Below, piece after piece: positions 6,301 to 57,700 of a stretch of 64,000 bases of DNA; within the stretch, counting starts at the first letter, position 1, and each line of letters starts with the position of its first letter. The notes under the pieces are model-generated. The model was not told where the DNA came from. It was given only the letters and a program-made list of their open reading frames with translations, and searched no databases. The DNA comes from Thalia democratica. Its lineage: Eukaryota. The stretch spans positions 43,710,001 through 43,774,000 of the forward strand of contig OZ241826.1 in the NCBI GenBank assembly GCA_965202585.1, read 5' to 3'. Position numbers and translations under genes: made by a program.

Positions 6301-6551
6301 AAAAAAAAAAAAAAAAACGTTAAAGCTTTGAAAAAAGAGCGCAAGCTTGCAAAATTTACTTATCCAGTTCTAATAACAATGAAAGAGATAAGGGCAACTC
6401 ATTTTAAACAACAACCAAAAAAACAACGATTTTTTTTCGTGCAACAAAAACATTCCTGCGGCGCGGCAAAAAACAATCTAGTTTCGCTCCGATTCGCGCC
6501 AAATTATCCAACTCGAGTCGCTGCAGCTTTCAGCCAATCGCAGTCGTGTTT

Positions 6552-9500
6552 TCAACCACTTCGTCGCAGCTCGGCGGCGCTACCTACCGGTGATTCCGCT
6601 TTGCTCGACACGCGGTCAGTTTCAACGCTTCCTCGCGTGTCGTCTATTTCTTTGTCGATGTTGAATATGCTCGAATGCTGGCTGGCTGAGGTCTTGCTGC
6701 CGTCGTCTCTCGCGGCTTTGCGCCGTCGGACTTTGGAGTCGTCCGGGCTTGCAGAGTCTTTACTGAGGTCTGTCGTTTCGCTTATTTTTATGCTGGGAAT
6801 TTCTTGCGGAGCGACGCGGTTTGCCGACCTTTTGTTCGGTTTGTTCGCACCTTGAAGAACTTTTATGCTTTTTTTGCGAGGTTTACTTTTGCATCTACGC
6901 TTCGAGCTGTTTTCTGTGTTTGTGCCGAGAAAGGCCGGATTCGTAAGAGGAAGCTCGGCATCTGAAAAAAAAAAAGTCAAAAACAGGATATTTCAAAAAA
7001 AAAAACGAAAAAAAATTTACTTGAGGAAAAAAGAGACTCGTCAAAAGCCGTGTCGGTCTCCAGGCTGAGGAAGGAGTCGACGGATCCCGACTGCTTGCAC
7101 TGCTGCTGGTCGTCACTCACCTCCTTCGCAACCTCCCCGCCGCGCCCCTTCTCCATCTCGTCGTAGTTGCCGTGGGGTGGCGCGCTCGCGATGCTGATCA
7201 GCTCGTACCCGCTGTCGTACTTCCCCCTCGAAGACGACGGCGAAGCCCCTCGTTGCTGGACCGGGGAGAGAAAGAAGCTGCGACGCTGGACGCTGGGCGA
7301 GGCGTAGTCGTGCGTGACGGTGAAAAGCTGGTTGCTGGTTGGCTGCTGGCTCCGCGACGAAGTGACAAGCGAGGTGGAGCAGTAGGTCGTGGCCGGCTCG
7401 CCGCAGATGGAAGCCAGCGACGGCTTCCGCTGCAGCTTGATGAGCATGACGTCGTCGCGGCTGTTGGCTATCAGGTGTGACGTCACCGAGTTCTTGAACA
7501 GGACTTCTTCACCTGAGAAAGGTTGGTAACTTTTTTCAAAGCGGTGAGCTTGTATTACAATGAGTAAAGATTTGCATTCATTGGAATAAATTTTTAAATG
7601 GTCGTCTACTATTCTTTTGCGAAGTCTGAACACTTAAACATTATCATTAGTAAAAAGTAATTTTCAAAAGCTTAGGTCAACAGTGTTGGGTAAAACTTGT
7701 TGTAAGCTAACAGTTATGACTACAGTAACATAAAAATAGCTTAGGAGTCTTATACAATATTAACTTGAGTTGTTTGAGTTTTTGTTCGCCTCGGCAATGG
7801 CAGTCATCGATGACGGAGGCGGAGGCAGTTCCGAGTAAAATCCGTTTGATGACGTAGTTTTGGTTGTGACGTCACTTTGCTCGCTCTTTCCGGACCTAGG
7901 CGACTTGACTGAACTTTCGTCACTGTTGGTAGAAACACATTTTAAATCAAAAACAGCAAGCTTGTTAAACAAGAACAAATACACTTGTTCAGATATTTTA
8001 TTTTCTGGTATGTTGGCAAAAACAAACGCGGTATAACGAAATAGTTGATTGAAAACACAATAGCTGTTTAAAATACAACTTAGGAACGGTTATGTTTTTG
8101 TCTCGAACAATCAAGAGTATGTTAATTTAATTTTATAAAAAAATTGTAGTACTTTTTTTACTAATAAACACAGATTATCAAAATAATAAACAAGTATTGA
8201 TTCAATGAAACAAAATAAAACTGACTTAAGTAATAACGTATTACAACAGAATTGACAATGAAAAATTTTAAGCCATAAAGTTTTCATAACTAAACAAAAT
8301 AAGTTTATACAAAATTGAATGAAAATAATTATTTTTTTTGGGTTTTTACATTTGTATCAATTTAAACTGATGCTTACAAAATATAAACTTTTATTAAACA
8401 TTCGAAATAAAGTATATTGGTTTAGAGCTAAGAAAATCTTTTAATAACTTAGAAATATTTGTTTAAATTAGAATCTTATGGTAAGCAAGGTCTAGTTCTA
8501 AAAATATTCTTGTACTTAAAATAGCTAATTTTAAAACCTTTCTTTAATTGAATAATTGCTTGTAACATCAATTTTTAAACACTTAATTGGAAAGAGCTAG
8601 TAAACAATGAGCGATGTGTTAAAGTTTGAAGTTGCTTTCACACACTTAACAAAAACAATTTACAATCAACTCACCCGTTTGTTATTTGAGGGGGCGGCAC
8701 AGGAAACGGGGTTATCTTTGGAAGGTCGGAGTGTAAAGCCTGTTAGGTCGCTCAAGTTTACAAATACTATATGCAAAGAATACTCATATTCCTCAAAAAA
8801 ATAACATGACATAAGTAAAATAAAAACCAAACTCTAAAACTGTGTTACTTTTTTAGCGTAGGACAATTGTCATGCGTTTATATAAAGTTTAGTTTGTTTT
8901 AATACTACCTTTTGTGCTTATACATACGATAAGTATTTAGTTAGCTTAGCCTCCGTTTTATTATTGGAAATTTTTTCTAAAGTGTTTTACTTGGTACAAG
9001 TAAACCTCCAAACATATACTCAAAAGTACCTCACCTTGGCATACTCGTCCCTAATGTTCATCATCACGATGCTGCCGTTTCGCTTCGCCGACTCCAACGC
9101 CTCTTTTCTTTTCATGGATTTCTCCTGCCTGCGCTGCTCCTTGTAAAACTCGCTGAAGTTGTTCACGATGATCGGGATGGGCAGCGCGATCATCAGCACC
9201 CCGCTGATGCAGCAAATTGCGCCGACAAGTTTGCCTGTGACGTCATAATGTTTCAACCGTCAGGTTTTAGTTTCGGCATTAAGTTAGACTGGAATTGTGC
9301 TTCTATTAATGTTTTTTGTGTTTTACTGTGCGGTATATAAGTTCACTGCTGTATTTTGTTATGTTTTACTGAGAATTATTTTTTTTTTGTTTTGTTTATA
9401 AAACTCCAAACTACTTAAAAGAATAGGTTTATTGTTTTGTGTAGTGAATCTGGTCATTTTACTAAAATCTGTTTGTTATAACAGTTTTAGTTGTACTGTA

Positions 9501-32005: not shown

Positions 32006-35000
32006 TCATATCTGGCAGGGGTTTGCCACACTTCCAGGCCATTCACAAACATTATAGTCCGGGTTCCAAATAGTTCCATCAACGCAAACAAACTCGTACT
32101 CAATACCTTAAAAATTTTTATCAGAACTAGTTTTATAAAAACATAACAACAATATTTTCATATTAAATATTAAATTTACCCCATACGCATCGGTAAACTT
32201 TGCAAGTTGCTGGATCTTGTACGATATCTTCGTGCAATCCTTCGCAAAGGCTTGATGATCTCACTATAAAAATTTTAATTTTAAAAGTAAAAACGAGTTT
32301 CGTTCTTCTAAGATATTTAACATAAGTGACCAGTAATTATACAATAGGTTATACAGGACACACAATTTCAAAAACACTAAATATATTTTCAGCAATTCTC
32401 ATCAGTAGAGTACAAAGTTAACCAGTAATAAGATTTTACTAACTTATATAGTAACCAAGGAATCAAGTAATCATAAAGTAATCAAGAGATTAATAAAATA
32501 AAAAATTAATTAGTAACAGTTAAAGTCAAGTAATTTCATTTACGTTTTAATTGAACTACAGTAAAACTAAACATAAACAAAATGAAAACAATCTTTATAA
32601 GATATTAAGAAAATAAAGAAACAGTGTAGTCAAAATCTTTTAGGTTACATAAAACAGGTTTCCTTAACAAAATACAAATGGCTTCTAATTTAATCAAATC
32701 GAAAACATTACTACAAGTTTTAATAGTTTTAAATCTACATATATTATAACTGTTTGCACAAGTTGGATTATTAACTAAATGTTCTGCAATAGATAATCGT
32801 TTAGATGCGTTTAAAACTTTGACTGGTATATCATCTTTTTTGTCTGCAAAGCAAAAATTCTCAACACTTTTTGGTACATGCAAACCCTGCTGTCTTGATT
32901 ACTTTATGATTACTTGATTACTTGGTTACTATATAAGTTTGTAAAATCTTATTACTGGTTAGCTTTGTACTCTACTGATGAGAATTGCTCGAAATATATT
33001 CAGTGTTTTTGAAATTATGTGTCTTTTTAGATATGTTTATTATAATTTGTTATAAATTGATTTGTATAAGAACTTTAAAACGTTTAGTTTTATTACAATG
33101 TCGTTTTAAACTAATAAAATCTACCTTATTTGTTTAAGTTTAACTTTAGTATATAACACCAAGAATAAGCTTACTTAAACGTGAAACTGTGTAGACATTC
33201 AAAACTCTAAATTTAAATAATAAATTAAACAAGTTTTACTTGAAAATGTTTCACATCCAGGAACATTTTCAGGGTAGTCACACATGTCCGTGGACGGATT
33301 AAAAACAAGGTTCGCAGAACAGTTGAATAGAACAGCATTTCCTAAAAATAAATTTCACCGAAGTTTAATTGTCAGTGTTAAACTACAAAAAATAACTACT
33401 TTAATAATATCAGTATTTGTACTATTCAACAGAAACAAGGTAATATACCTAAAACGTCGCATTCATAGAATTTGGAGCAGTCTTCGGGAACTGGTAGCAA
33501 ATTTCCAACTTGAATTTGACCATTTTCTCCGACACAAACTTCTACAAGAGCAGAAAAGAAGTTAAAAGGGCTTAGATGTTTTATGTTTATGTCTTTTTGC
33601 TTTTAACAATAATAAATACGTGGTGGACTGTTTTGTCTTTCAAGTTTTTTTACAGAATATTAAATTTCATGTATTATATGTTTAGAATTTTTTATAATAC
33701 CTAAACTTTATGCAACAATTTTTCTTTAGAAAGATGCTTGTTTTTCTGCACGCCAACTTAAACACTGTTCTAAATATTTAAAAAGTAATTACTATTGTTT
33801 TGTTTTTGTTTAATGCTTATTAGTTGCTTTTTAAAAGACCGCTAAAAGTAAAAAAAAAAGTCAGGAACAATTTATACTTTGTTTGTTATAGATGTATCAT
33901 ATAGCTGGTTCTACCTGGCGGGGTGATGAAGAGATCAAGGAGGGCGGCGTTTGAAGCTTCAGCGGCGTTTCCGCTCTCGTCGACTGCCCTCATCGCAAAC
34001 CCGATCCTTGAATATTAGAAAACTTTTTTGAGAATGGATTCACAGATTAGGTAATAAACTGTTACGATATATTGCAATACGAAATAGTTATTAACACTTG
34101 TTTCGAAAATGTTCACTATTCAGGTTGAAAAAAAAAATTTAGACGTGATTAGTTTTTAAAATACATAAAAAAAAAAACATGTTTAAACACCATTTACTAT
34201 TAGTATGAAACTTAATTCTTACTTTAAAACCCCGCTGTCTTTCGGAAGATCGTCCAAAACAACATTGAAAGATTCTTCATTGCCGCTTGATGCAGGGGAC
34301 TTGAGATCACCAGAGATCAGGTTGCTTGGCAAGACTTCGTTTTGTTTATCAAAATCCAATCGGAGACTTCTTGCGTCGCCGTATGTATAACGAAGCTCGT
34401 AACTAGAAGCTGTCAGATTAGTATAGTTCTAAAATTTTGTCATACATCTAAAAAGTAATTATTATTAATTAACTTTTTTTAAAGATACTTTAGTAAAAAT
34501 TTAAAAGGTCGTTGAAGTTAAACTTTTTCTAAAGCACCTTTCCCAACATCGTAGTCATCACCGGGAGCCGTGAACATCAGCTTGAAGCCTTTTGTGACGT
34601 CAAACACGTCGAGTTGCTCGGCTGTGAGATCAATCACGCTTGCAGGTGGAAGAATGTCTTTTGAACCGTCAATTTTAGGTCTGAAAAAAACTTTTTGCAT
34701 GTAAAAGTTCAAACTTAAGTTGAATAACTTATAAAGAAATTTATTTTGAAATATGTTTGTCCACTTCTTTCAAAAGTTTGTTTAGTTTTTTAACAGTTTA
34801 AACAATACCCAGTATATTCAAATCCTCCAAGTGATTGAGTTCTTTCAAATGATTCTAAAAATGCAGAATCCAGTCCATCTATGTCTTGTACGGTAGGTTT
34901 CGCGTTTTGGTTAAGCTTTAGCGTACCTGAAATAAATTAGTTTCAATCAGACTTTAATAAATTTATAAGTTTGTTAAAAAACACAAACCATCTTCTGAAA

Positions 35001-38000
35001 CGACTCCAAAGTTGTACGCTGCAGTTGAGTCCAAAGTTTTACTGATTGTTGAGTTGCCTATGCCAGTAACTTGAACCTATTTATTCAAGTATTTTTTTAT
35101 TAATATTAAACTTGTTTATTTTCTGTCTGTAAAAAACTCTACGAACAATTATAAACGTTTAAAATTTTTATACAATATTTAATACAAACGTTTTACAACA
35201 CCCTTTATTAAAAAGATAAGAAACCTTCATTGAATATCTTCCGGTGGCTTTGTATCCGAAGAAGTATGCTGAGTACACGCCATCTGATTTACGGGTATCA
35301 GGCGCTGTGAATATAATAAAATATAAAAGTTCCTTTATTTAGATTATATTAATATTTTATCTTACCTGCTCCTCGGTCAAGAAGCTGCACACATTCAGTA
35401 CTTCCATCTGGGAACGAAACAGTTGCTACTACATCGACGTTCAAGATAGGTTGGAACCCTTGCGTAACCTGTAAGCGTTTTTTAATAAAAAAGTGGTAAG
35501 AAAAACGCAGAAGTACTTTATTATTTCGTAGCTAACCTGAGCATACAAAGTGATAGGCGTAGTTGTGTCCATAGTCGAACTAGACATTCCTGCCTTCACA
35601 GAAATAGGCTCCACATTTGGATCGGACACTTGCGAAGACACGCTCGCAGTTACTGTGTTTTTGGAGGAAGAAGAAGCTGTGTAAGTCCATGTTCCTGCCT
35701 GCATCAAAAATCCTTGAAATTATTTGACTAAATATAGAAATTAAAAAATTGCTTTTGAACTTCGAGTCTTATACCTTTTTTTTTTATAGTCGGAATATAA
35801 AACTAAATAAGCTTAAACTTTAAAATAAAACCTTAATGTATCTTGTTTGAATAATTTAACGTACTTTAAAATTAAAAAAAAAAAAAGGTTTACCTTGGCT
35901 ATTCCGGGAATTTTAAATTTGATAGATCTGTAGGTAGGATCAACTTCAGCCATGAGAGTAGTATCACACTCTGGTGAATGAGGCACAAAGGAGCAGAACA
36001 TGTTGTCGTCAGGATCGTAGAGATCCACGTAGGGAGCATCTGAGTTTGTGTAGGAGAAACTAAACACCGTGTTGCTGCCGACGGTTGAGTCGACAGAAAC
36101 TGAACCGGTGTAGTCTTGGTCCTTTTTGACTACAAAATCTTCGCTCTTTAGCTGAAAAGTATTTGTTAAGCAGCTGTTAGTAGGGACAAAACTACTAAGA
36201 TAGTAAGACTGAATGATAGCAAACTATTTTGCTGTTTGTTTGTTTAAGAGAAGCAATTAAAAATTTTTACTTCAAAACTTTTTCCTGTATAATTTCCAGA
36301 GTTATCTTCAGATACTTTATCAAAAAATTCGGTAAGTTCTATCAAGGAGTTTGCGTATGTCCAAATTCCTTGGGTATCGTCCGTTAGTTTTATCATAAAA
36401 TCGTTTCCTTCTTCTACTCCAAAAAATACAGAGTGAAACACGATACCCTTGATGTAGAAAATATTTAACAAAGTGTACAAGTTGTGTTAAAAGTACTAAG
36501 TTGTAAGAAGATAGTTATTTAGCTCAAAATCATATGGTTTGGGTTTCTAATAAATTTTATTAAACATATAAAAAATAAACTCCTAACAATAATACTATTA
36601 TTTTAGATGTTTTTAGTGTTTTTTTAATTTATGTATTTTTATTTAAGCAACTACAAAAAAAAGCATATTAAATTAGTTTAGAATCTTACCGCTTCAATGA
36701 CATCTAAACTAGATTGTGGTGGCCAACTCCTTGTTTGCTTTCCATCTGTAAGACAGATGATTTGGGATCCTTCAGTATTTCCAGAAGCTTTAAGCATCTG
36801 TTAAAATAAAAAAATGGAAATTAAATGGCTTAATATATCAATACTGTTACAAAAAACTTTATTAGATAAAAAAGCAATCAAATTGTTTACTTCCACAGCT
36901 TTATCTACACCCAAGTCTATGTAAGTTTCGCAGCAGACAACATTTTTCGGAGCAGGTAAACTCGACGAGAGCTTGTCGCGGTCGTCTTGGGAGTTGATTT
37001 TCGTGAGTTCGCTGTCGACTTTCACCTTTTTGTTGAACTCAATGAGCCCGACTTCGGATCCGTTCGGAGCGTAGTTCTTGAAGAAGGCGTCGGCGGCCTG
37101 GAGCGCGTTGAACATCTTTGACGCATCTCCCTTGAGGTTCTACAGAAATGATAGACTGTGATTTAAAGTACAGCGTAAGTCAGTTCCCGGGCTAGTTCAA
37201 AAATGGTTTGTTACCAAAAATACAATTTGTAAACGAAAGTTTTTTGTAAATTTAGTTAAGAAAACCAAGAACAAGCAGTCCTATTTGAGATAAACACTGA
37301 TAAAAAAATAACTGATAAGTTACAAAAACAACTAAATTAAAAAAAAAAACATCATATTTCATGCTGTCCGAAGTGTCAACGACGAGCACAATTTTGTCGT
37401 ACGAGTAAGGCTGGACCACGTTGAAGTTCGGCTCGAGATCGGTTACGCTCGGGTGCGGCTTCAGCCCGTCAAAGTCCTCGCTGGAAGTAATCACGTCCCA
37501 CGCGCTTCTCTGGCTGCACAGCCTGTTGTGCTCGTTGGGCGCCTCGTAGTTGTGCAGGTTGGCCGGGTCGCTCTGGTCGTCGTGACAGAAGTGGACCACC
37601 TGGTTGAAATTTGTTTTTGTAGGACTTTTGTAAGTTTTTAAATTGTTAGTGGGTATCTAAATTGAGATAGCGTGTCAAAAAAACAAAACTGTAATTGTTT
37701 TAGGCTAATTAGGAACTAAAATGCTTTGTACCTTTAAAACATTTAATTACTTGATGCATATAATCATAACTTAAAATAAAAAAGCAACAGTTTAATTATT
37801 TTTAAATATAACTTGATACATGTAATAATCATTATAAAAATAGTTTAATTATTTTAAAGTATTATTGTATAAATAAAAACGGAAAAATTTATATATTTTT
37901 TACAACTTTTTTGTTAATAAACTAACGTTTTCAAGAAAATGATACGCCATCATAGACACTGTGACGCCATACTGGTCTTCGTTCGGAACAAACTGGCATT

Positions 38001-39246
38001 CTCCTTCGTAAGGAAAACCTGTTTGAGGGTTCAGTTCGCATGGGCTTGTTTGCAAGTTTCCATTCGCGTCAGTTTCGATGTGCACGAAATCCCCTTTCAG
38101 TGCAGCTGGGCATCTAAAAATCAAATATTATTATTATCAAATATTTTAGCCCTGTAAAAAGTTTTGATTTTCTTACTTTATTTTCTATTTTTTATTGTTA
38201 AACCTAAGAGCTTTAAGTGTATTTGTAAACATAATACGATCTTGTAAAGGAACCAACTTGTTGGCTTCAATTTTTTCAGTGACGGAATCGAAGTAGAACT
38301 CAGGATACCCATCTCCACCTGTTTCGTCGAAAACCCCCCATCTCAGATGGGCCCATTCATGAACCATCACTTTACCTTGGGTGGATGATTTGTAAGAGTT
38401 TTAAGTACATGGAAAAAAGTTTTAATTTTCAATTAAAAACTTCTTAAAACTTAATTTTACACAAACAAAGATATCTAAACAATGTGTTTAATATACTCGA
38501 TACTTAATTTAATTTAGATTACGACAAATTAAAAACTACCTTTAGGTCCCCAACTTGCAACGTGGTCGTCATTGACAACGTAATCTGGGGTGAGGTGGAT
38601 GTATTCCCCGTGAACCTGGCAACCTCCGAACTGAAGGGTGTAGGGCTCGTCACCATGACCTGGGTGCTCATCGGCAACCAATACGTCCGCCTTTTAATTA
38701 ATGTAAAATTTATAAACACAAGTATCTACGTTTTAATCAGCATATTTAGAAAACCAATATGAAATCATGAAAGAATTTTTATAAAATATATATGAACTTA
38801 CTTTGTCGTAGGAATACAGTCCTGATTTATCGTACGATCCCGAAGTCCAAGAGGTCGGAACTAGGATGGTTATGTCTTTGAAGTACGCGTGTTCTTTCGT
38901 GGCTACGTACAGAGACTTTGATGCGTCACTCCAAATTTGCTGCGGGAAAAATTTAAGTGACGCTAAAATTTCATGTGTATGTTAACAATTATATTCAAGT
39001 AATCATAGTAAATTGTTAAAACGTTTAAAGGATATACAACATATTTTAGTTTTTTGCTAAGTTTAACTTTTTTTTTAAACCAACTTTAAGTGAATCAACT
39101 ATTTTTGTGTCCTCCGGAACGTTTGGGTTTATCGCAATGACGATCCCCTCGTAACCATTGTCAACTATTTGAACGTTGTCATAGTTACAAAATGCTTTGT
39201 TAAAGCAAAGCGATGCTAAAACAAGAAGGATGAAAATTTTCTTCAT
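32006..39246 (-). CDS. CLCA: CLCA-family secreted protein (signal peptide, HExxH metalloprotease, VWA, beta-sheet/FnIII region) with two C-terminal CBM14 chitin-binding domains, ~1050 aa. Exons: 39246-39085, 38939-38802, 38690-38540, 38375-38258, 38113-37927, 37599-37351, 37139-36891, 36797-36690, 36447-36271, 36151-35894, 35698-35537, 35468-35366, 35304-35225, 35076-34989, 34926-34809, 34680-34538, 34409-34223, 34006-33915, 33541-33449, 33341-33240, (33186-33175), 32263-32180, 32106-32006
   Basis: NGYEGIVIAINPNVPED, DEPYT, VHEWAHLRWGVFDE, MIDAS VLVVDTSDS..T..LTDG, DGVYSAYF, PPASVIDL, FTAPGDDYD, FAMRAVDE and six-Cys peritrophin-A patterns. Every intron is GT-AG and phase-consistent. Confidence 0.92.
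32374..32411 (-). ncRNA. Degenerate minimal type I hammerhead ribozyme motif
   Basis: Minus strand reads actcta CTGATGA gaattgct GAAA atatat t tagtgt. The C normally pairing with G10.1 is absent. Confidence 0.5.
32969..33006 (+). ncRNA. Minimal type I hammerhead ribozyme motif
   Basis: actcta CTGATGA gaattgctc GAAA tata TT cagtgt: catalytic cores, a 2-bp stem II, a palindromic ATATAT stem III and an imperfect stem I. Such minimal HHRs are typical of Penelope-like element repeats. Confidence 0.65.
33175..33186 (-). other. Candidate 12-nt micro-exon of the CLCA gene (phase 1-1)
   Basis: ctacacag|TTTCACGTTTAA|gtaagc is frame-preserving and stop-free, with a 53-nt upstream intron. Confidence 0.45.
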
Positions 39247-39289
39247 GATTTCAGTGTTTGTGTATGAAAAAGGCAGTTGGCTGTTAAAC

Positions 39290-39341
39290 AACTGAAATTA
39301 TGCTTACAAATGTTGACACCACTTTTTATATGAAGTTATCA
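39290..39341 (-). promoter_or_regulatory. CLCA core promoter: TATAAAA, Inr-like TCAGTT and an adjacent GATA site
   Basis: On the minus strand TATAAAA starts at 39330, TCAGTT is at 39295-39290 and TGATAA at 39341-39336. The same elements with the same spacing occur at 45254-45305. Confidence 0.5.
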
Positions 39342-40450: not shown

Positions 40451-42527
40451 AAAGTATAAAATTCAGCTGAAACCGGATCTTTCGTTAAAACTTTGACTGT
40501 GCCTAATCCGGATCTTTATTTTCAACTAAAGATACGACTGGATTAGGATTAAAATAAATCAAAATGTTAAGATAATCATACATATAATTTTTTGTTTATT
40601 TATTACCTATAATAGGGATTGGTAGCTTTTTTAGTCAACGGGTCAGATTTGCCAGAAATACTTTCAAGGACAGAGTAATTTTTTAAATCGAATAACATAT
40701 GAATTGATACGCTTGTAGAGTTTTACATAATACTTTTCAGTACTTAAGAAATTTTTAAAATACACGTTTTTGGGTCTATTTTTAGTTTAAAGTTAAGTTT
40801 AGGTTAAAAACTGTGTTAAACAGTAGAAAAAAAGCTACTTTGAATCTGAAGATACTGTAAAGCTACTTTAAAAAATTTTTCAGCGCAAAATTGTATAAAA
40901 CTAAACAATCATGTAGTAAAGCACTACTGTGTACGTTACACGAAAATTCTAATTCTTGAAAACATATTTTAATAGGCCACATCTCAAAAACTTATACAAA
41001 TTTGAATAAAAACACGTATATAGGTCTAAATAATACCTACAAACACATTTTGTTTTAGAAGAAACACATTTATTTAAAAACAACTTGAAAAATTACGATA
41101 CTTTAAAACTTATTTTAGCCACATATCTAAATATTTACAAAGAAAAAAAAAGTTTTTGTAGGTATTAATTAGACCTACATACACATTTTTTATAAAAATA
41201 ACTTTTTGAGTTGTGGCCTTTTTTTTAAGAGTGTAAATAGTCGTGCATCCGTACAGATAACTAAACTTGTAGTACATTTGTTGTAAAAAAAGGTCAGTTT
41301 TAGTGTTCTTGAACAAATGTTCTCAAAGAAAAGTGTCGCGCAGAAAAGGTTTATGTCTCCCTCGGTTCAAACTTTACCTATTTCTAACCTATAATTGTAT
41401 TCTAGCTAATAATTAAACGAAATAAGATGAGCTATATCTTCTTTACTGATATTTATTTAACAACTCTTGTCACAGAACAACATACGGCCTACAGGAAGAA
41501 TTTTAACAGTACAATTTGTACTATCCAGAGATATAAAAAAAGTGTTTGAATATAAATTTAGAATTTGATTTAAATTAAATTAAGATTTTGATTTTAAATG
41601 GTTGTAATACTGATAATTTTTAGTTAGAAAAAAATAAAAAATACTTTTTAATATAAGTTTACAAAAGTAAATCGGCTTTCGAAAGCCTATGTTTGACGAA
41701 ACCGGCCCGTTATGACAAAAGGCTGTCACATCGAATAAAGTTACTCAACACAAACATTAAAAAAGACTAGTTGGTTTAGATACTTAAAAAATGTTTACAA
41801 TTGTTACAATTTTGTTACAATTTGAAACAGAAAAGAATTAAAACAATATACTTTTTTATCATAAAAGAAAAAAAATCTATAAATCGAACAAAAAGCTTTA
41901 GTTTATCAAATTATGGAAAACACAAATTAATAAAGCGTAAAAAATTAGAAAATGAAAAATAAAGAGATTACAAATTTTTCTTTCGATTTCTCATAAAACG
42001 ATTTTGTAATTTTACAGCAAAAAGAAAATATCTATAAATGTTTGTTTGTATACAACAATTTGACAAAATAGCTAATGTTGTGGATTTTTTAATAATCTGG
42101 AAATTAATTGTGTATTTTCTGAGAAAGTTTTGTAAAAAATTTAGTGTGATTAATTTGTTAAATAGACGTTTAGTTTTCATTAAATTGTTGAGGCTTTTTT
42201 GAATAATTAGATCCGGATAGGTTTTAGTTAAAATCAGAGTTTGGACAGCAATTAAGCTAGATTTAGTAGATCTCAAATAATACATTTCTATATTAAACTT
42301 GAAAAAATGTAATTATCAGTATAAAAGAAATTATTTGTAATATTGGTTGCGACTTTTATTTAAAAAAAATAATGAAATTCTAGAAATATACAATGACTTT
42401 TTATTGATACGCTTTATAGCTTTACATTACATTTTTCAGTACTTAACAATTTAATCTTTGTAGATATACTTATAACAACGACAGATTAACAAGTAAAGAG
42501 TGTATTAGAACTTTTTTTTAGAAATAA

Positions 42528-42878
42528 CAGGATTGCCAAATGTTTTTGGCAAATTTTCTCCAGGTTTTTAAAAATACACGTTTTCGGGTCTATTTTTGGT
42601 TTAAAGTTAAGTTTGAGGTTAAAAACTAAGTTAAACAGTATTAAAACATTGAAAACATACTATAAAGCTATTAAATGTGTTTTTCAGTAATTTTTTTTTG
42701 ATGATGACAAAGTTTTTTTTATCTATATTATAGATTTTTTGTGACAAACCAAAATTTTTCTACTTTACATGTAAAAATTGTTTAAAGTTCCTTTTTTGTT
42801 AATTCTCAAATTCCGAGTTTTTTAGCCTAAATTGTCAAATTCCAGGTTTTTCAAGGATTACAGGTTTTTTGGCAATTC
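42528..42878 (+). mobile_element. hAT-like MITE with target-site duplication
   Basis: Imperfect TIR caggattgccaaa / tttggcaattc, flanked by the direct repeat AGAAATAA (42520-42527 and 42879-42886). Absent at the paralogous site near 50225. Confidence 0.7.
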
Positions 42879-43250
42879 AGAAATAACCATTCAGCTTAAA
42901 AATATAAAAAACATTAAAACTTGCTTAAATTATAACCATCCATGATTCTGACCAAATTAAATTTGTACAATAAATCATTTTAGTAGTTTTAAGGTTTTGT
43001 TTTTGTGGTAATCTTTGTATACATTGAAGTATTGTCCTTATACAAACGACTAAAATTTCGAAAACTAGAAGCTGAAATTAACTTTTTACTTAAAATAATT
43101 GAAAATAAAACAATGCAAAACCACGTAACATTAAATATCAAATATTAATTTTAAGTTTATGCTTAGCTCGCTTAGCATTTGATCAAAACAGAAATGTATA
43201 GTTAATTTTCACCTCAACACTAGTTAAGTTCATTAGTAAATAATATTAAA

Positions 43251-43611
43251 CGGAACGGGTCAAGTATGCACGAGGGTCACTTTTGCACGGAGGGTCACTT
43301 TTACAAGAAGGGTTATTTTTGCACGAGAGTTTACAAAAAATACAATAAAAAACATTATAAAAAATAATAAAAAAAGTTACTGGCCTAGGGTAAAGGTTAG
43401 GGGTAACAGTGGTAGTACAAATAATGATAAAGAAACTAACTAATAAAAATTATTATCAAAAAAAAGCAGTATAAATAAAAATAAACTATAAAAAAGAAAA
43501 GAAAATCAAAGTTATCGACCGGGGTAAGGGTTAGGGGAAACAGTAATAGAAAAATATAATACAAATGATAACTAAAAAAGATTACAATAATAATAAAATT
43601 AATCAAAAAAA
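43251..43611. mobile_element. Unclassified interspersed repeat at the duplication junction
   Basis: Tandem gcacg(g)agggtcactttt units at 43269-43330 and two internal ggtaa(a/g)ggttagggg(t/a)aacagt repeats. A related fragment lies at 626-665. Confidence 0.6.
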
Positions 43612-44729
43612 AAATCATATGTATAGTTTTCTCAATAGGATAGTAACAGAATTAATTGAAGAACAACTTAGTTTGTTTAAATTCTAATTTAAAGCTGTTT
43701 ATATCTTAAGAATTATAAATAAACTAAATAGTGTTTTAAAAACCAAAATTAGATTATATAATTTTTTGACGGGGTTACATTTATTTTAGCAAACTTAGAG
43801 TTACAAAAATAAAATCTCATGCTTTTTATATTGTGCTAGAATGTGTGCAGGAATTCATATTTACATCAAAAGCTTTTTTTACTTATATAAATTTTAAAAC
43901 TTTATTTTGTTAACTAAGTGTGTTTTATACTAAATGCAGCAACTAAAGTTATGAAAAACCCAATTAAATAAATGTATGGTTTTTGTTGTTGTTTGTTTGA
44001 TTAAAAATTATACTTTTAGACTACAAGGAGATTTTTTATACTTACTGTTTGCTCATTTTCTTAAAATAATTAAAAAAACTTTTTGTCTAAAAAAAAATCA
44101 TTGTTACTTTAGTTGTGTTTTGAACATATAAAAAGTAAATTACTTAGTGTTATTTAAGGTTCGATATTTAACTAAATTTTAACAACTTTTTAATGCTGAG
44201 TTTGAAAGTGTTACTACTTTTAAGCCTAAATATTTTTTCTTTTATCTTATTACGAAAAGTTTTAAAATTGTTTTCTTTACAGAAGTTATAAAACATTTAA
44301 ACTATTTTTCTTTAAACTTTTGTTAATAAATTTGTTAAACAAAAAAAGATTTGTTCGTTTATAATATTTGAAAATAAAATACTTAAGCCCACAATTACAA
44401 ACATGATTAAAGTTTTGATATATTTTATGTTTGTCTGTTAAATAGTGAAGTATTTAAAGTCAAGGTAAGAAAATTACTTTAATTATTTTTCAAACTAAAT
44501 AAACAAGTACTACAAAATATGTAGTATATATGAAAAAATAGTTTATGACAAACTTTTTATTCTATTTTGTAAATAAGACAACTTTCTAAGTTTTTGATGT
44601 AAAGGTCAATTTAACATCAAATGAACAGCATCTTACTTTTACTTTAAAATACAACATAACATATGATTTAGTAATTTTTTTTATTTTTAAAGATTGCGAT
44701 AAGGTAATGAAAAATTAGTTGAAGCTGAC

Positions 44730-45230
44730 TCATATTTGACAGGGGTTAGCCACATTTTCAGGGTAGTCACAAACACAATAGTCCGGGTTCCAAATAAATC
44801 CGTCAGCGCAAACAAACTCGTGGTGCTCAGTATCTTAAAAATTTAATCAAAATTAGTTGTTTAAATAAAACAAAAAACTTTTATATCAAATATTAAATTT
44901 ACCCCCTATGCATCGGTAAACTTTGCAAGTTGCTGGGTCTTGTACCATTTGTAAGTTCTTTCCTTCGCAAAGGCTTGATGATCTCACTGTAAAAATTTTA
45001 CTTTTAAAAGGAAAAACGAATTTTGTTCTTTTAAGGTATGCTTAACACAACTTTTTAAAATTGATTTGTATAAAAGCTTTAAAACGTTTAGTTTTATCAC
45101 AATGTTGTTTTAAACTAAAACAAATCTACTGTATTTGTTAGGTTTAACTTTAGTATTTAATACCAAGAGTAAGCTAACCAAGACTAAAGCAAAGCGATGC
45201 TAAAACAAAAAGGATGCAAATATTCTTCAT
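44730..45230 (-). CDS. Secreted single-CBM14 chitin-binding mini-protein, 79 aa: MKNICILFVLASLCFSLVRSSSLCEGKNLQMVQDPATCKVYRCIGDTEHHEFVCADGFIWNPDYCVCDYPENVANPCQI. Exons: 45230-45179, 44986-44903, 44833-44730
   Basis: 240-nt spliced ORF with donors GTTAGC and GTAAAT, acceptors ttttacag and ttttaag, and phases 1-1. It has a hydrophobic signal peptide homologous to CLCA exon 1, six domain Cys, and a retained TATA/Inr and AATAAA (44685-44680). Confidence 0.75.
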
Positions 45231-45253
45231 GCTTCCACTGTTTGTGTAAAAAC

Positions 45254-45305
45254 AACTGAAACTATCCTTACGAATATTAACACCAATTTTTATATGAAGT
45301 TATCA
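45254..45305 (-). promoter_or_regulatory. Duplicated CLCA-type core promoter driving the mini-gene
   Basis: TATAAAA starts at 45294, TCAGTT is at 45259-45254 and TGATAA at 45305-45300. Confidence 0.5.
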
Positions 45306-48848: not shown

Positions 48849-49535
48849 AGGCATCTTTTTAGTTGACGGGTCAGAAAAACTTTACTGGGCCGAATAATTT
48901 TGGAAAATCAAACAATATATATGTAATCAAAACTTTCAATGCAAAAATGTATTTAAATAATCATTCACTAAGCAATACTGTGTACAGAGAACTGATATGA
49001 TAACATATTTGTTTAAATCTTAATAATAAAAAATCTCAGTTTTATTGGCATTAAACAAATTGTTCTGAAAGAAAAAATGTCGCGCGTTGAGCTTTTTTGC
49101 ATCAACTCAGTTCATGCTTTTCCTAACATATGATCATGTTCTAGCTAAAAATGAAACAAAATTAGATAAAAAAGATCTAATTTTCAGAATTTTTATTCAA
49201 TAAATTTTGTCAAAGGTGGACAACATGGAAGAACCTGGCTCGTAAATAAACTTATAATAATATAAATTTGTACTACTCAAAAATATTTTTAAAACTGTTT
49301 GAATAAAAATTTAAATTATGAGTTGATTTTAGTGTTTTTTAATGGTAGTGTTGCTAATAACTTCGAGCAAAGAAAAGATCTTTTTTAGTATAAGATTAAA
49401 ACAGTAAAGCGGTTAACGAAAGTCTATTTTTGACGAAACCGGCCCGTTATGAACAAAAGACTGTCACATCAACTAAAGTTACCAAACTTTAATATCACAC
49501 ATCTCAAATGTGTCTTAAGACCAGCTGATGTAGGT

Positions 49536-49747
49536 CAGGATTTCCCAAAGTGAGCCATATAGAAATTATCCAGGGGGCCTAAAAGGCCACAATTTGAAAC
49601 TTAGACTAAATATTCCAGAGTTAATCGTGATCAAAAAGGTCCTAGGTGTATTTAAGGGAAGTTTTTTTGAGAAATCTTGTAGGAGGTGGCCATAGATTTT
49701 TTATTTATTTAAAGGTGGACTTATGAAAAAAGTTTAGGAAAACCTAG
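49536..49747 (+). mobile_element. hAT-like MITE
   Basis: Imperfect TIR caggatttcccaaagt / agtttaggaaaacctag. Related to the element at 410 and absent from the paralogous site near 41770. No clear TSD. Confidence 0.55.
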
Positions 49748-51733
49748 TGTATATATATATAAAGTTACTACAATTTAAAACCGAAAAAAATAACTGTTTG
49801 TTTATCATTAAAAGAAGGATGCAAAGTAACTATGTATCGATTAACAAACTTTCATTGGTTAAATTATGCAAAAAATATAGCAATAAAGAGTAAAAAAAAT
49901 GAAAAATATCTATTTAAGAAATTTACCGTTAGGTTTTTCACATAACAGTTTTGTAACTTTACAACAAAAAGATCTACAAATGTTTGTTTACCTACAAAAA
50001 TTGAAAAAGTACCTAATATTAATTACAATTAATTGTGTATTTCCAGGGAAATTTTATAAAAAACTTAGCTAATTTTGTATTCCTATAAATACACTATTTC
50101 TTTATGTTCATACGCTTGTAGAGCTTTACATTAGATTTATAAGCACTCAACAATTTTAGCTTAAAAAATTTCCACTTAATCGACAGGTTAACAGTAAAGA
50201 GTTTGTCAGGACTTTTTTTTTATAGAAACACCGATTCAGTTTAAGATTATCAAAAACTTTAAAAACAGTTAAACCTGCTTAAATTGTAAAAATCTATAAT
50301 TTTGACCAAATAAAAATTTTGATAATAAATCATTTTAGTAGTTTTATAGTTTTTTTTTTTGTGAGAATTTTTATACATCATGAAGTTTTTTTTTTACAAA
50401 CAAAAGTCTAAAATTTTAGAAAGTAAAAATTTAAATAAACTTATTACTTGAAATAATTACAATTAAAAAAATGCAAAAATATGTAATACTAACTACTATT
50501 AAAACTATTTTCATTCAGCTTATTAATTAAATGAAAAACGTTAAATTTTTTAACTCATTACCTAGTTAAGTTTATGAGTAAATATTATTTAGAGTGCAAA
50601 AACTGACAATAATAATTAAAAAATTTATAGAGGTATAAGATCAAACAAAAAACATTACTACAAGAAGGCTAATATTAAACTATATGAGATTAACTCACTA
50701 AGAGTGAGTTTTTAAAATTCAACATTAACTTCAATCATGAAAAACTACTACACTACAAGTGAAATACTATTCATTTATAGGATCAAGATAAATTCACTAG
50801 CAACAGATCATTTGTTTTACTGCAGCTTTAAAGTTTTAATAACACATGATATAATATCCCTAAGAATAAAGGAAAGTATAGTTAAACCATGAAAACTTAA
50901 GCTTTTTTAATTGAAAAAAATGTTAAGAAATCTTAAATATTTTTTGCATTACTAGTTCTATAAATACAATAGACATACATGTTATATATAAATAGGAAAA
51001 TTATAAGCTTAAAAAAAAATTAACAATCAAACTCTAAAAAAAATCTGTTTTACAAAAATAAATCATATACTAACATCTAAGATTGTCCTTAATAAATAAA
51101 TAAAAAGTGTACATTTCAATAAATGTTTTCCCTACAACGAAAAATCGATAAAAAGTTTTATTAGTGCAATAACTTTCGACCTGATAAAATCACACAGACT
51201 CAAATATTAAACAAAGATACAACGGTTATTTAAATAAACACAACATAATATAAACAAACAAGAATCCTATACAACTAGTTTAAATCTAATTTGAACCAAA
51301 ATGTTTTTTTTCTATACTAAGTTATACACTTAGAGCAGAACATTTACGAAAAACACTTATATAAATATTTTTTTTAATCAATTATGATGGTAAATACTGA
51401 AAAATAAAATTCCTACATATAATTATAAACTATTCTGATGATAATTAAAAACAAACTTGAGTTTTTATTTTACCCTATCAAAACTATCATACATTAAAAC
51501 TTATTATAAATATACTAAATAAATTAACGGTTATAAAAAAAATTTTAATCAAATTTGACAACAGCTAAGGAAAGTAAAGTTTTACACTTCATCTTTTTTT
51601 TTAAACAGTAGATTATACTTAGATGAAAAAGTATAAGCTACTTTACAATAAATAAGCTTAGAACCATATTCAAAGTAAAAACAAATGTGTATATATACCA
51701 ATACATCAGGTCAAATAATAAAAAATAAAAATT

Positions 51734-54700: not shown

Positions 54701-57700
54701 ATTGAAACTGGATTAACTAAATCTCGTTCTAGATCAAAAAAAAAATTCCCTTGAGATTTTTTAAAAAATAATAAAACTTAATAATAATAGAATAAACCAA
54801 ATTTCCCTGAAATTTTTAGAATAAACCAAAATTGCCCTGAGTTTCCCTGAGATTTTCTATAACTTGAAAACTCCCTGAGTTTCCCTGAATTACCTGAGTG
54901 TGTGGCAACCCTGAAGGAGCGACATTAACAAACCTTTTATAAAGATTTTCCTATCTGAAAATTTATTCTAATTTAATATATAAACACCGACGGGTTGTTG
55001 AGCATGAAGCAGTTCCACAGCTTCATCATCACCTTCTCGCCCTCGTTAACGTCAGTAAACTCGTCCATCAGCTTGCCCATGTGCTCGTTCAACCACTGGG
55101 TGGCGCCCTCGCACTCCTCCTCGCTGTCGTCGCTCAGGTTGGCCGGCCTCACCGGCAGCTGCGACGTCGAGTGGAAGTAGAGCCGGTTGTGCCCTGCGCG
55201 ACGTCACAAATATAAAATGAAGCTTTTAATTGATAACTGTTTAAAAAGTTTTAATGAATTTTAAATTTAAGTGATTTTTAACTATTTAAACAAATTTTGA
55301 TTTATTGTTCTTTTCTAAATGTGTGATGTGATATTTTAAGTTAACTACAGTTTAGTTAGTCTTCATAAACTCATCATACTTTAAAAACAATACCTAGATG
55401 TTTTTCGTTAATGTAATCTCTATAAATTATCAAATAAATCAACTGACTGTCGTCGTAAATGTTGTTGTTTCCGGTGTTTCCCCTCCTACTTCCGTGGCTT
55501 CTGCCGTCGCAAAATTCGGCGATGGTGTCCGAAAGTTCAAGCGCGTCCATGGTGTCCATCATCTGCTGCCCCGCGACCCGCTTCTTCCTGGTTGCCATGG
55601 TGACGGTGGCCGAGGTGACGCGCTTGATGGGCCCCATGCGTCCTGAGCACAGGTCGGGAAGCGCGTACATAAACTGTTTTTGTTTTTTTTTCTACAAAAT
55701 ATTCAACATTAATAACTACATATAAAAACGTAAAAAACACTAACAAAAACTTAAAATGGCAAGAGTAACTATTAAGAAATGGATTCTATAAAATATGATT
55801 AAATCATATTTTGATAATGATTTGAATTGTAGACACAAAAACTGAGAAGAATACAAAGCTAAGTCTACTAGTATTAGTAAGTGTTTTTAATTTTGTCAAA
55901 GTATGCATTAAAATGCGTTTTGCAAAAAAAACAACAGACTTAACTCAATTTACATTCACTACATTTACTCCACAAAAATGTGTTATCATTAACTACAAAA
56001 AGTTTAATCTAGTTTATCATAACTTACAAAACTATTTAACAATCATTAACATGCTTATTATAAATTTAAGTGACTTTTGGAGACTTTTTTGAGACTCCGT
56101 AGATCTGTTCTTAAATTTATTTGAGAGCAGTGAAACGCCGTTAGTCGGAATAAAGTTTAAACACAAAAACATCTGTGGTATACATTCCGATAAGCTTAGC
56201 TTATCAGGATCTCTAGGATTTAACGCTTTTTAGTGTTACATCTTTATATATACTAATGGGGTAACGAACCGCGGGGTTGCCGTGAAAGGAGTGGTCGTAG
56301 CACTCGTTCAAGTTGACTTCCATGATGTACTTCAGGGGCTGGTTGGTGGGCGGGTAGAGAGAATCGTCGTCGCTTATGGCGTTGTTTGTGACGCAATCGG
56401 GGTGCAGGTGAAGCTTGAACTTCAGGCGGGGGTGGCACAAGTGCTGGTGCTGTTATTTGTATAAAAAAATTTATTATGTGCTTGTGCTGTTAGAAAGCTT
56501 TATTAAAATCTTTAAGTTTCTAGTCCTAAATTTAAGAAAAATATAAATTCAATGCCTTTAGATTTCAGGAAGCTCAATTCACAACAGTACTTCTTTAGAA
56601 TCAAATTTAACTTGGCCACATTAAGTCTGGATAAAAATGCAAAAATAATTAGCGACAATAATGTGGCTACAATTAAACAATCTACTAATAAATATAATAA
56701 ACACACTCGTAACTTCAACAACTCACCATGACAAACGACTTGATGTCGTGGCACCTGATCTTGCACCAGGGGCACTGCAGGTCTTCCAGCAGCTGCGTCT
56801 GCTGCTGGGTCATCTGGTTGTACACGAACTGCATGTACACCTTCACGCAGGGCTTCTTGTCGCCGTTCGGCCTGAGCGCGGGCTTCTTGTAGCCGATCAG
56901 GTCGAAGATACTCGGCTTCTCCTCGATCGTGTCTGGTAAAAAATCTTGACTTTCAGTTGTTTTTTTTTTTAAACATGGAAAATAAGAAAAAGTGTTTAAA
57001 CATATTTTTTTTTTCAATTAACGCAAAAGTATATATTGTAATACATTTTATTTGAATAATGTATTAAACATTTAATGTACTAAATGCAAGAACTTTGTCT
57101 GACAAAAATATCTTAATTTAGTTCTTTTTAGTTTTTTATTAAACAGGCAACGTGTAAAAACTGCACATAATTTTTTTAAATTTATACACAAGTACATTTT
57201 GTAAATAAAATTTATTTCTCACTATAATCAACTCAATTAAATCCTAACCGTTTTCTGCGAATCCATTGTGATTTTGTTCGTATTTAGCAACACTCTGCTT
57301 CTCTTCTTGCTGGTTGATCAAAGTGATGTTTGTTCGTTGTTGCTGGTCCATCAGTCCGTTGAAATGTGTCGGACTTTTTGAAGGAGACGAATGTCCATTC
57401 GATTTTTCTTCCCAGCTAAAGTAGTTTAAAAGAATTATTGGTTTATTAAAATTTTAAGTATTTAGTAGATAGTTTTGCCAATTTCAGATTTCATAAGGAC
57501 TAATCAAACCAAATTTTTTTTTTTTTTTTCGTATCTTAGTAATACTTTTCGTAATTACTTTTGTGATCATTTTTACTACTTACCTTAGAAATACCATAAT
57601 ACTTTTAATTCAAAATCGTCTTTATCAATCACAAATAAAAAACAAGAACAATTTTAAACCACTAAAACAACCTTAAAGATTTTAAGGGCATAGGGGGGTA

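Follow-up and report, generated by a model that had tools for sequence, protein, structure and literature searches.

A probable young gene for a secreted chitin-binding mini-protein, derived from a neighbouring CLCA metalloprotease gene of Thalia democratica

The stretch of Thalia democratica DNA analysed here (64,000 nt; contig OZ241826.1 of assembly GCA_965202585.1, positions 43,710,001 to 43,774,000; hereafter the window, to which all coordinates refer) harbors, at 44730-45305 of the minus strand, a small three-exon gene, referred to below as the mini-gene, together with a gene for a CLCA metalloprotease, referred to as the parent. In this study, the mini-gene was judged, with a probability of about 0.72, to be a real, young and unannotated gene that originated by duplication and deletion, is spliced and constrained, and likely encodes a secreted chitin-binding mini-protein. 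An earlier note on this DNA had proposed that the 5' region and the signal-peptide exon of CLCA were fused to its terminal exons for the chitin-binding domain CBM14 to form a new gene, and this proposal was supported by collinear paralogy, by RNA and by conservation.

Joining of the minus-strand exons 45230-45179, 44986-44903 and 44833-44730 gave 240 coding nucleotides with TGA and a product of 79 amino acids, in which a signal-like hydrophobic N-terminus was followed by one CBM14 domain, and the reading frame contained no internal stop. Both introns were of the GT..AG type, with the donors CTTG/GTTAGC and GGGG/GTAAAT (the slash marks the splice site) and the acceptors TTTTTACAG/ and TTTTTAAG/. 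The uninterrupted three-exon frame with intact ATG, splice sites and stop that had been described in the earlier note was thus reproduced. Its AATAAA and its putative TATA and initiator (Inr) elements were also found intact, the former being present in the 3' untranslated region (UTR) of the parent as well and the latter in both the parent and a second mini-gene lineage, L001, which is described below. Likewise, all six reported cysteines were in place (Cys24, Cys38, Cys43, Cys54, Cys67 and Cys77), with Cys65 as the additional seventh, and the only coding indel relative to the terminal CBM14 exons of the parent was, as had been stated, one of 3 nt (His49), with about 2 gap events per 100 nt in the flanks. 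The exons are covered by no open reading frame (ORF) of at least 45 amino acids, and the ORF track therefore misses the mini-gene, which also agreed with the earlier account.

Evidence for transcription was provided by contigs of marine metatranscriptomes, which were placed on the window at a 90% identity threshold. The first contig (record 3 of X1, a marine metatranscriptome run of 2016; 260 nt with 1 mismatch) aligned to 45228-45179, 44986-44903 and 44833-44708, and the second (record 8 of X2, another run of the same study; 176 nt with 9 mismatches and no gaps) aligned to 44985-44903 and 44833-44741. The junctions 45179/44986 and 44903/44833 were exactly as predicted in X1, and 44903/44833 was also found in X2, where the RNA of a 5%-diverged relative has exons 2 and 3 joined identically. 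With about 85% identity, the paralogous CLCA exons fall below the placement threshold, and they therefore cannot account for these contigs. The X1 contig begins at 45228 and ends at 44708, and both ends of the transcript probably lie beyond it. The open-ocean metatranscriptomes of this one 2016 study were found to hold transcripts of this animal and of 5%-diverged relatives, and they could be mined for further unannotated genes of this genome.

The parent gene starts at 39246 on the minus strand (MKKIFILLVLASLCF), and the first 15-16 residues of its product, a Lys and a hydrophobic stretch, match the N-terminus encoded by the mini-gene. Its domain makeup is CLCA-VWA-2xCBM14: the Pfam CLCA N-terminal domain is distributed over three exons, including the one holding the start, the HEWAH metalloprotease motif is located in the ORF 38185-38370, and the first CBM14 domain lies at about 33560-33262. 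By its sequence, the parent is plausibly the gene of an active enzyme. The two CBM14 domains were observed to be joined via a phase-1 intron (33240-33262 / 32263).

Self-BLAST and direct-repeat analysis revealed that 45606-45185 matches 39678-39201, which holds the CLCA promoter, the 5' UTR and the start of exon 1. A second collinear block, 45178-43557, matches 33174-30844, a stretch running from the penultimate intron across both terminal CBM14 exons and the 3' UTR into downstream DNA. Furthermore, 41632-42025 matches 49369-49972 further upstream, which indicates that the whole unit of about 12.7 kb was tandemly duplicated. The upstream copy is without about 6 kb, equivalent to 33175-39200 of the parent and containing all of the CLCA, VWA and first-CBM14 exons. 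The homology of the mini-gene to the parent is collinear, non-coding DNA included, on both sides of a single breakpoint (45178/45185), with the 5' homology ending at 45185 (parent 39201) and the 3' homology beginning at 45178 (parent 33174). The mini-gene arose by partial duplication and internal deletion, in which the signal and the 3' end of the parent were kept.

This breakpoint coincides exactly with the new donor of exon 1. The mini-gene donor GTTAGC aligns with GTAAGC within the parent intron, and in the parent, the end of the exon preceding the terminal CBM14 most likely lies some 60 nt upstream of it (CAA/GTAAAA, phase 1). Since the homologue of the donor lies inside a parent intron, the exon-1 donor was recruited from a cryptic site and was not inherited as a splice site. 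The phase that it leaves, phase 1, is also that of the CBM14 acceptor, so that the frame continues from the signal peptide into CBM14. In addition, the c-region of the signal peptide, SLVRSSS, is a new sequence context because the donor is a cryptic intronic GT at the breakpoint. The cryptic GTAAGC (33174-33169), about 60 nt inside the parent intron, was observed to fit the donor consensus better than the apparently used CAA/GTAAAA.

Two further differences between the copies were observed. About 690 bp in the parent intron (32326-33013, minus strand) are missing from the mini-gene copy; this insert is flanked by a direct duplication of about 20 nt (TTATxxTAAxATATCTxAxAAGA) and contains an ORF of 92 amino acids (32605-32883) with no Pfam match, and it is probably a transposon insertion that postdates the duplication and has an unusually long target duplication. 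Moreover, the mini-gene of the window (45231-45254) has lost a segment of about 20 nt (AACAGCCAACTG.CTT.TTCA) just downstream of the Inr-like motif, and its 5' UTR is therefore shortened; the segment is kept in the parent (39247-39290) and in the metagenome copy of the mini-gene (L001 150-197).

The metagenome copy was recognized by a protein search, in which the sole close match (P0001) was an ORF that runs from intron 1 into exon 2 of a genomic metagenome contig. This contig, L001 (623 bp, from a marine metagenome assembly, ERZ27291622), carries TATA and Inr-like motifs and a mini-gene whose exons 1 and 2 measure 52 and 84 nt and whose introns 1 and 2 measure 172 and 86 nt, and it ends after the first 32 nt of exon 3. 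L001 has in common with the window mini-gene the breakpoint sequence AGTCTTG/GTTAG, the 3-nt insertion (His49) and eight derived residues (K27, L29, Q30, M31, I44, G45, D46 and H50). Judged by these features, L001 is an independent lineage of the mini-gene type, orthologue or paralogue alike. Between the window copy and L001, non-coding DNA is 77-80% identical (about 21% divergence, 11 indel events) and the introns are 77-79% identical with 7 indel events (intron 1, 77% and 4 events), whereas exon 2 is 93% identical and the covered exons are without indels. In the mature part (39 codons), 8 synonymous and 4 replacement changes were counted, which gave a ratio of non-synonymous to synonymous substitution rates (dN/dS) of 0.09-0.10 (binomial p = 6e-4). 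The signal peptide contained seven replacements, with its length and hydrophobic character unaltered.

A neutral drift simulation (200,000 trials) was run with the substitution and indel rates observed in non-coding DNA against L001, and a trial passed if the ATG, the four splice dinucleotides, the frame and stop-free reading were all kept; the fraction that passed was 1.7e-4. Additionally, a close relative, organism B (DNA run X5, about 1-2% diverged), differed by at least 14 substitutions and at least 4 indels in 44560-45300. Among the X5 variants listed, only 44967 lies in the 243-nt coding sequence and it is synonymous (Cys24, TGC>TGT; binomial p about 0.008), and the single RNA variant listed for X2, 44778, is synonymous as well (Tyr64). 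Frameshifts and stops, which in the earlier note were to betray a pseudogene, were seen neither in the window copy nor in the covered part of L001, organism B or either RNA contig, and no lost splice site and no dN/dS near 1 between the mini-gene copies was found. The low dN/dS, the intact signals and the variants avoiding the coding sequence therefore disfavour a pseudogene. The mini-gene is under purifying selection.

When two conserved exon-2 patterns were scanned in the metagenomes of the Joint Genome Institute, the first had no match, and the second had one 21-nt match in a groundwater contig that showed no flanking similarity and was dismissed as chance. The exact 79-residue protein was missing from a collection of 15 billion proteins, and apart from the P0001 fragment no protein above about 45% identity was found in libraries of 5.8 and 1.8 billion sequences.

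The comparison of the mini-gene with the parent is uninformative on selection: the exons are 85% identical and the introns, UTR and flanks 81-87% (non-coding divergence 13-22%), and dN/dS is 1.17. Changes were then assigned to branches from three sequences (parent, window copy and L001), with no outgroup to split parent from mini-gene changes. On the branch from the parent to the mini-gene ancestor, there were 11 replacement changes, 0 synonymous changes and one in-frame codon insertion, and on the two mini-gene branches together there were 4 replacement and 8 synonymous changes, so that the regimes before and after the mini-gene split differ significantly (Fisher p = 0.0013). Unique changes at 240 non-coding sites numbered 20, 29 and 21 on the three branches, a roughly even spread (relative-rate p = 0.2) which indicates that the split of the mini-gene lineages came soon after the duplication. 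The replacements were concentrated in the Cys1-Cys2 loop (27-31) and the Cys3-Cys4 loop (44-50), and this clustering suggests complex events. The 20 nt encoding CDYPENV (44771-44752) were identical to the first CBM14 of the parent and had 5 differences from the terminal one. We infer that a micro gene conversion from the first CBM14 of the parent made the Cys67-Val73 patch, perhaps at a time when the copy still had a first CBM14 of its own, which was later lost with the internal deletion.

Two interpretations of this history were considered and rejected. Positive selection on the stem, which the 11 versus 0 changes would suggest, is not claimable, given the missing outgroup, a probability under neutrality of about 0.08 for 0 of 11 changes being synonymous, and the clustering. 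Concerted evolution between the mini-gene and the parent was prompted by silent sites of the 3' half, which seem closer between the neighbours than between the two mini-gene copies, but the near-trichotomy of the non-coding branches suffices to explain them.

At the protein level, Pfam CBM_14 (PF01607) matched residues 24-74 on profile positions 1-51 of 53 with a marginal score of 22.8 bits against a cut-off of 22.1. A phmmer search gave 142 matches with E-values up to 1e-3, and the top and the single-domain ones that were checked were CBM14 proteins; the best were multi-CBM14 proteins of amphioxus, lamprey and insects with 30-40% identity, and a few small single-domain relatives of 83-107 amino acids were among them. 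In an alignment of 60 sequences, the six cysteines of the mini-protein fall in invariant or near-invariant Cys columns, which predicts three disulfides. The residues Gly26, Asp34-Pro35, Tyr41, Gly57, Trp60-Asn61-Pro62 and Asp68-Tyr69-Pro70-x-Asn72-Val73 are also kept, with Gly57, Trp60 and Asn61 fitting the G-x-x-[FW]-[ND] strand. The column of Tyr69 is aromatic in most sequences (Y in 26, W in 19 and F in 6 of 59), and Tyr69 occupies the position of Trp465 in CHIT1, an aromatic two residues after Cys5 to which a key role in chitin binding is ascribed (PMC4844120). None of the other 59 aligned sequences has a cysteine matching Cys65, which makes the number of cysteines after Cys14 odd. The mature domain is acidic, with an isoelectric point (pI) of about 4.6.

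An AlphaFold2 model built on the same alignment had a mean predicted local distance difference test score (pLDDT) of 78.9 and five strands, which form a distorted beta-sandwich; it replaced a poor single-sequence model (pLDDT 56). The top PDB matches found by Foldseek were all CBM14 structures, namely Avr4, the chitin-binding domain of CHIT1, tachycitin and Der p 23, with probabilities of 0.66-0.99 and query-normalised template modelling (TM) scores of 0.43-0.64. The E-values were weak (0.02-0.3) because the domain has only 62 residues, and the profile search agreed with Foldseek on the CBM14 family. By inspection, the predicted signal peptide consists of Lys2 and a hydrophobic stretch of 12-13 residues inherited from the parent, with candidate cleavage sites after Ser16, Ser20 or Ser22; residues 5-15 were helical in the poor single-sequence model.

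Several observations weigh against the interpretation as a constrained gene for a secreted chitin-binding protein. On Pfam, the mini domain scores 12 bits below the terminal CBM14 of the parent (22.8 versus 34.6), and the dN/dS of about 1.2 relative to the parent, with replacements clustered in two loops, may point to a changed ligand. The c-region of the signal peptide is new, and a cleavable signal peptide is predicted by inspection. The RNA support consists of two short contigs of low depth (word depth 3.5-3.9) from marine metatranscriptomes, and a DNA retrocopy could in principle be the source of both spliced contigs. L001 ends 32 nt into exon 3, before Cys65, Cys67, Cys77 and the stop, and it could be a paralogue rather than an orthologue. 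Finally, the co-regulation of the two genes that the earlier note had envisaged is unsupported. The promoters of the mini-gene and the parent are about 78% identical with several indels, and within them only the shared TATA/Inr core would bear on co-regulation; the runs with mini-gene RNA (X1 and X2) and those with parent RNA (X6-X8) are different samples, and these sample lists are uninformative on co-expression.

The fall in Pfam score from 34.6 to 22.8 bits would also fit a neofunctionalised secreted mini-protein, whose CBM14 scaffold was remodelled once it was free of the protease and which binds a ligand other than endogenous chitin (another glycan, a polyphenol or the surface of a microbe) or has an antimicrobial or opsonin-like role. 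The stem with 11 replacement and 0 synonymous changes and a codon insertion, followed by 8 synonymous and 4 replacement changes (Fisher p = 0.0013), is consistent with such a shift, as is the clustering of the stem changes in the Cys1-Cys2 (27-31) and Cys3-Cys4 (44-50) loops. Moreover, the CBM14 fold occurs with other ligands, such as in the Aplysia polyphenol-binding protein (8IN3), which was among the PDB matches, and an Avr4-family member is reported to bind pectin (PMC8104879). Neofunctionalisation is a serious alternative but is nevertheless considered unlikely. The conserved residues linked to chitin are retained (Trp60-Asn61, Asp68-Tyr69-Pro70 and Asn72-Val73), the changes to K27, D68 and N72 go towards the family consensus, the replacements are, without an outgroup, not assignable to the mini-gene rather than the parent lineage, and the clustered changes may represent one or two micro-conversion events and not many selected substitutions.

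It is very improbable that the mini-gene is a transcribed relic, that is, a decaying partial duplicate whose RNA is spliced by virtue of inherited signals and yields no functional protein. Between the two mini-gene lineages dN/dS is about 0.1 (p = 6e-4), the exons are free of indels against 7 indel events in the two introns, the start and splice signals are all kept, for which the neutral expectation is 1.7e-4, and the variants between organisms A and B avoid the coding sequence. These results oppose what speaks for a relic, namely that relative to the parent the coding exons (85%) are no better kept than introns, UTR and flanks (81-87%; dN/dS 1.17), that the exact protein is missing from the collection of 15 billion proteins, and that the low RNA depth would fit. 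Tunicates have operons, and the mini-gene shares its strand with CLCA, 5.5 kb downstream; the RNA contigs, being short, extend to no mapped 5' end and to no poly(A) site. Even so, there is hardly any likelihood that the three exons are not an independent gene and belong to a longer transcript, for example as alternative 5' exons or as an upstream cistron of CLCA. Behind the stop of the ORF lies an AATAAA that is conserved at the 3' end of the parent gene, the 5.5-kb spacer contains very high-copy repeats and gave no RNA contig continuous with the mini-gene, and the mini-gene has its own conserved TATA/Inr core.

The origin of the mini-gene can be summarised as follows. A unit of about 12.7 kb with the CLCA metalloprotease-VWA-2xCBM14 gene was duplicated in tandem, and the upstream copy lost about 6 kb, which extended from directly behind the hydrophobic signal-peptide core into the intron that precedes the two final exons. 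At the breakpoint, a cryptic GT of this intron became the exon-1 donor, in phase 1, and restored the frame into CBM14. The 79-residue precursor is probably secreted and cleaved to an acidic domain of about 6-7 kDa with three disulfides, which probably binds chitin fibres via the usual CBM14 face (Trp60-Asn61 and Tyr69). The parent would be a protease of the matrix whose CBM14 domains tie it to chitin, and the mini-protein would likely reside in the same extracellular matrix of chitin and mucus, which in tunicates may be the chitin-framed gut barrier. The mini-protein has no enzyme part and would therefore work by occupying sites: it would coat chitin and compete with the other proteins that are anchored by CBM14, the parent among them. 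In addition, the unpaired Cys65 may permit a covalent dimer or the attachment to, or cross-linking of, matrix proteins.

A bolder and rather doubtful extension is that the mini-protein regulates its own parent, in that a free chitin anchor competes for or pre-coats sites of the chitin-mucus barrier. In that case, the mini-protein would set where and how strongly the CLCA protease acts, the unpaired Cys65 would allow its covalent attachment to the matrix, and the burst of loop replacements followed by constraint would record the tuning of its affinity relative to the parent.

The origin of the mini-gene resembles that of the antifreeze glycoprotein (AFGP) gene of notothenioid fishes, which goes back to a trypsinogen-like protease gene (Chen, DeVries and Cheng 1997, cited after PMC6410882). 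In both cases the gene of a secreted protease provided the secretory signal and the 3' end, the protease body was lost, and the new gene lies beside its parent. However, the coding body of AFGP arose de novo by amplification of a 9-nt element, whereas the mini-gene keeps a pre-existing folded CBM14 domain. In the mini-gene, the frame was restored by a cryptic intronic donor, and the function of the mini-protein is probably still related to that of the anchoring module of the parent.

Free single-CBM14 proteins are represented by tachycitin (1DQC), Avr4 (4Z4A and 6BN0), Der p 23 (4ZCE) and the insect CPAP1 proteins and small peritrophins. As is predicted for the mini-protein, each of them combines a signal peptide with a single CBM14 domain of some 50-60 residues, in which three disulfides are conserved, and lacks an enzyme part. 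However, they are only 20-40% identical to the mini-protein and of independent origin, and the mini-protein differs in its adjacent and known multidomain parent, its odd seventh cysteine and its acidic pI of about 4.6. The CBM14 domain of CHIT1 (5HBF and 6SO0) has the same fold, with a query-normalised TM of about 0.6 to the model, and shares an exposed aromatic after Cys5 (Trp465 in CHIT1, Tyr69 in the mini-protein) and a Cys-x-Cys near the same strand. The extra cysteines of CHIT1 pair with each other (Cys460-Cys462; PMC4844120), whereas Cys65 of the mini-protein is without a spare partner because Cys67 is the Cys5 of the family. Moreover, the CHIT1 domain is basic and that of the mini-protein acidic.

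With regard to the parent, mammalian CLCA1 is a metalloprotease that processes intestinal mucus (PMC6085540), and the tunicate gut is lined by a barrier with a chitin framework, on which CBM14 proteins such as VCBP-C are found (PMC6109156). VCBP-C is held on endogenous gut chitin by its C-terminal CBM14 (PMC6109156), and the parent CLCA too has C-terminal CBM14 domains; in contrast to CLCA1 and VCBP-C, the mini-protein keeps the anchoring module only. No account of a CLCA protein with CBM14 domains came up in a literature search on CLCA in combination with chitin-binding or peritrophin. The CBM14 anchors of the parent hint at a link between the chitin gut barrier of invertebrate chordates and mucus processing of the mammalian CLCA1 type. 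Furthermore, the mini-gene provides an unannotated, predicted secreted chitin-binding protein for pelagic tunicates, whose extracellular matrix biology is little known. The birth of this gene can be read stepwise at the nucleotide level because the parent adjoins it, from the duplication through one deletion, the cryptic donor and a probable micro-conversion to purifying selection in at least two lineages. The origin route and the protein class are both already known, and the value of the mini-gene is that of a well-resolved example and not of a new principle. The features of the mini-gene and of its parental sources are collected in Table 1.

Table 1. Positions of the mini-gene features and of their sources in the parent CLCA gene
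Feature	Position	Strand	Basis
Parent CLCA start codon and signal-peptide part of exon 1, source of mini-gene exon 1	39195..39246	-	Sequence comparison
Parent CLCA terminal CBM14 exons (32263-32180 and 32106-32006), source of mini-gene exons 2 and 3	32006..32263	-	Pfam CBM_14, 34.6 bits
TATA-like motif TATAAAAA of the inherited CLCA-type promoter	45287..45294	-	Sequence; same motif in parent and L001 (three-way alignment)
TCAGTT Inr-like motif, putative transcription start region	45254..45259	-	Inside TTTCAGTTGTTT, conserved in mini-gene, parent and L001
Exon 1, coding part: ATG at 45230 and signal-peptide h-region, 17 codons plus 1 nt, phase 1	45179..45230	-	
Deletion breakpoint (about 6 kb, internal) with new donor GT at 45178-45177	45178..45185	-	Homology blocks end and start here
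Intron 1, 192 nt, remnant of the parent intron preceding the terminal CBM14 exons	44987..45178	-	GT..AG; skipped in RNA contig X1
Exon 2, 84 nt, first half of CBM14 (Cys24, Cys38, Cys43)	44903..44986	-	Covered by RNA contigs X1 and X2
Intron 2, 69 nt	44834..44902	-	GT..AG; spliced out in X1 and X2 RNA
Exon 3, coding part: second half of CBM14 (Cys54, extra Cys65, Cys67, Tyr69, Cys77), TGA 44732-44730	44730..44833	-	RNA contigs X1 (to 44708) and X2
20-nt patch, codons Cys67 to Val73	44752..44771	-	20/20 nt as in first CBM14 of parent (33282-33263), not the terminal one
AATAAA polyadenylation signal, 45 nt past the stop	44680..44685	-	Conserved in parent 3' UTR; RNA contig stops at 44708

Exon 1 of the mini-gene is identical to exon 1 of the parent at 44 of 52 nt. 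Elsewhere in the window, the segments 42394-42984 and 43182-43575 had a summed DNA word depth of at least 1e5, compared with about 100-600 elsewhere, and many internal joints, and they are very high-copy repeats. Two islands of raised G+C content (0.32-0.44 against about 0.25) were observed at 6001-8000 and 54900-56900, and both contain long overlapping ORFs on both strands.

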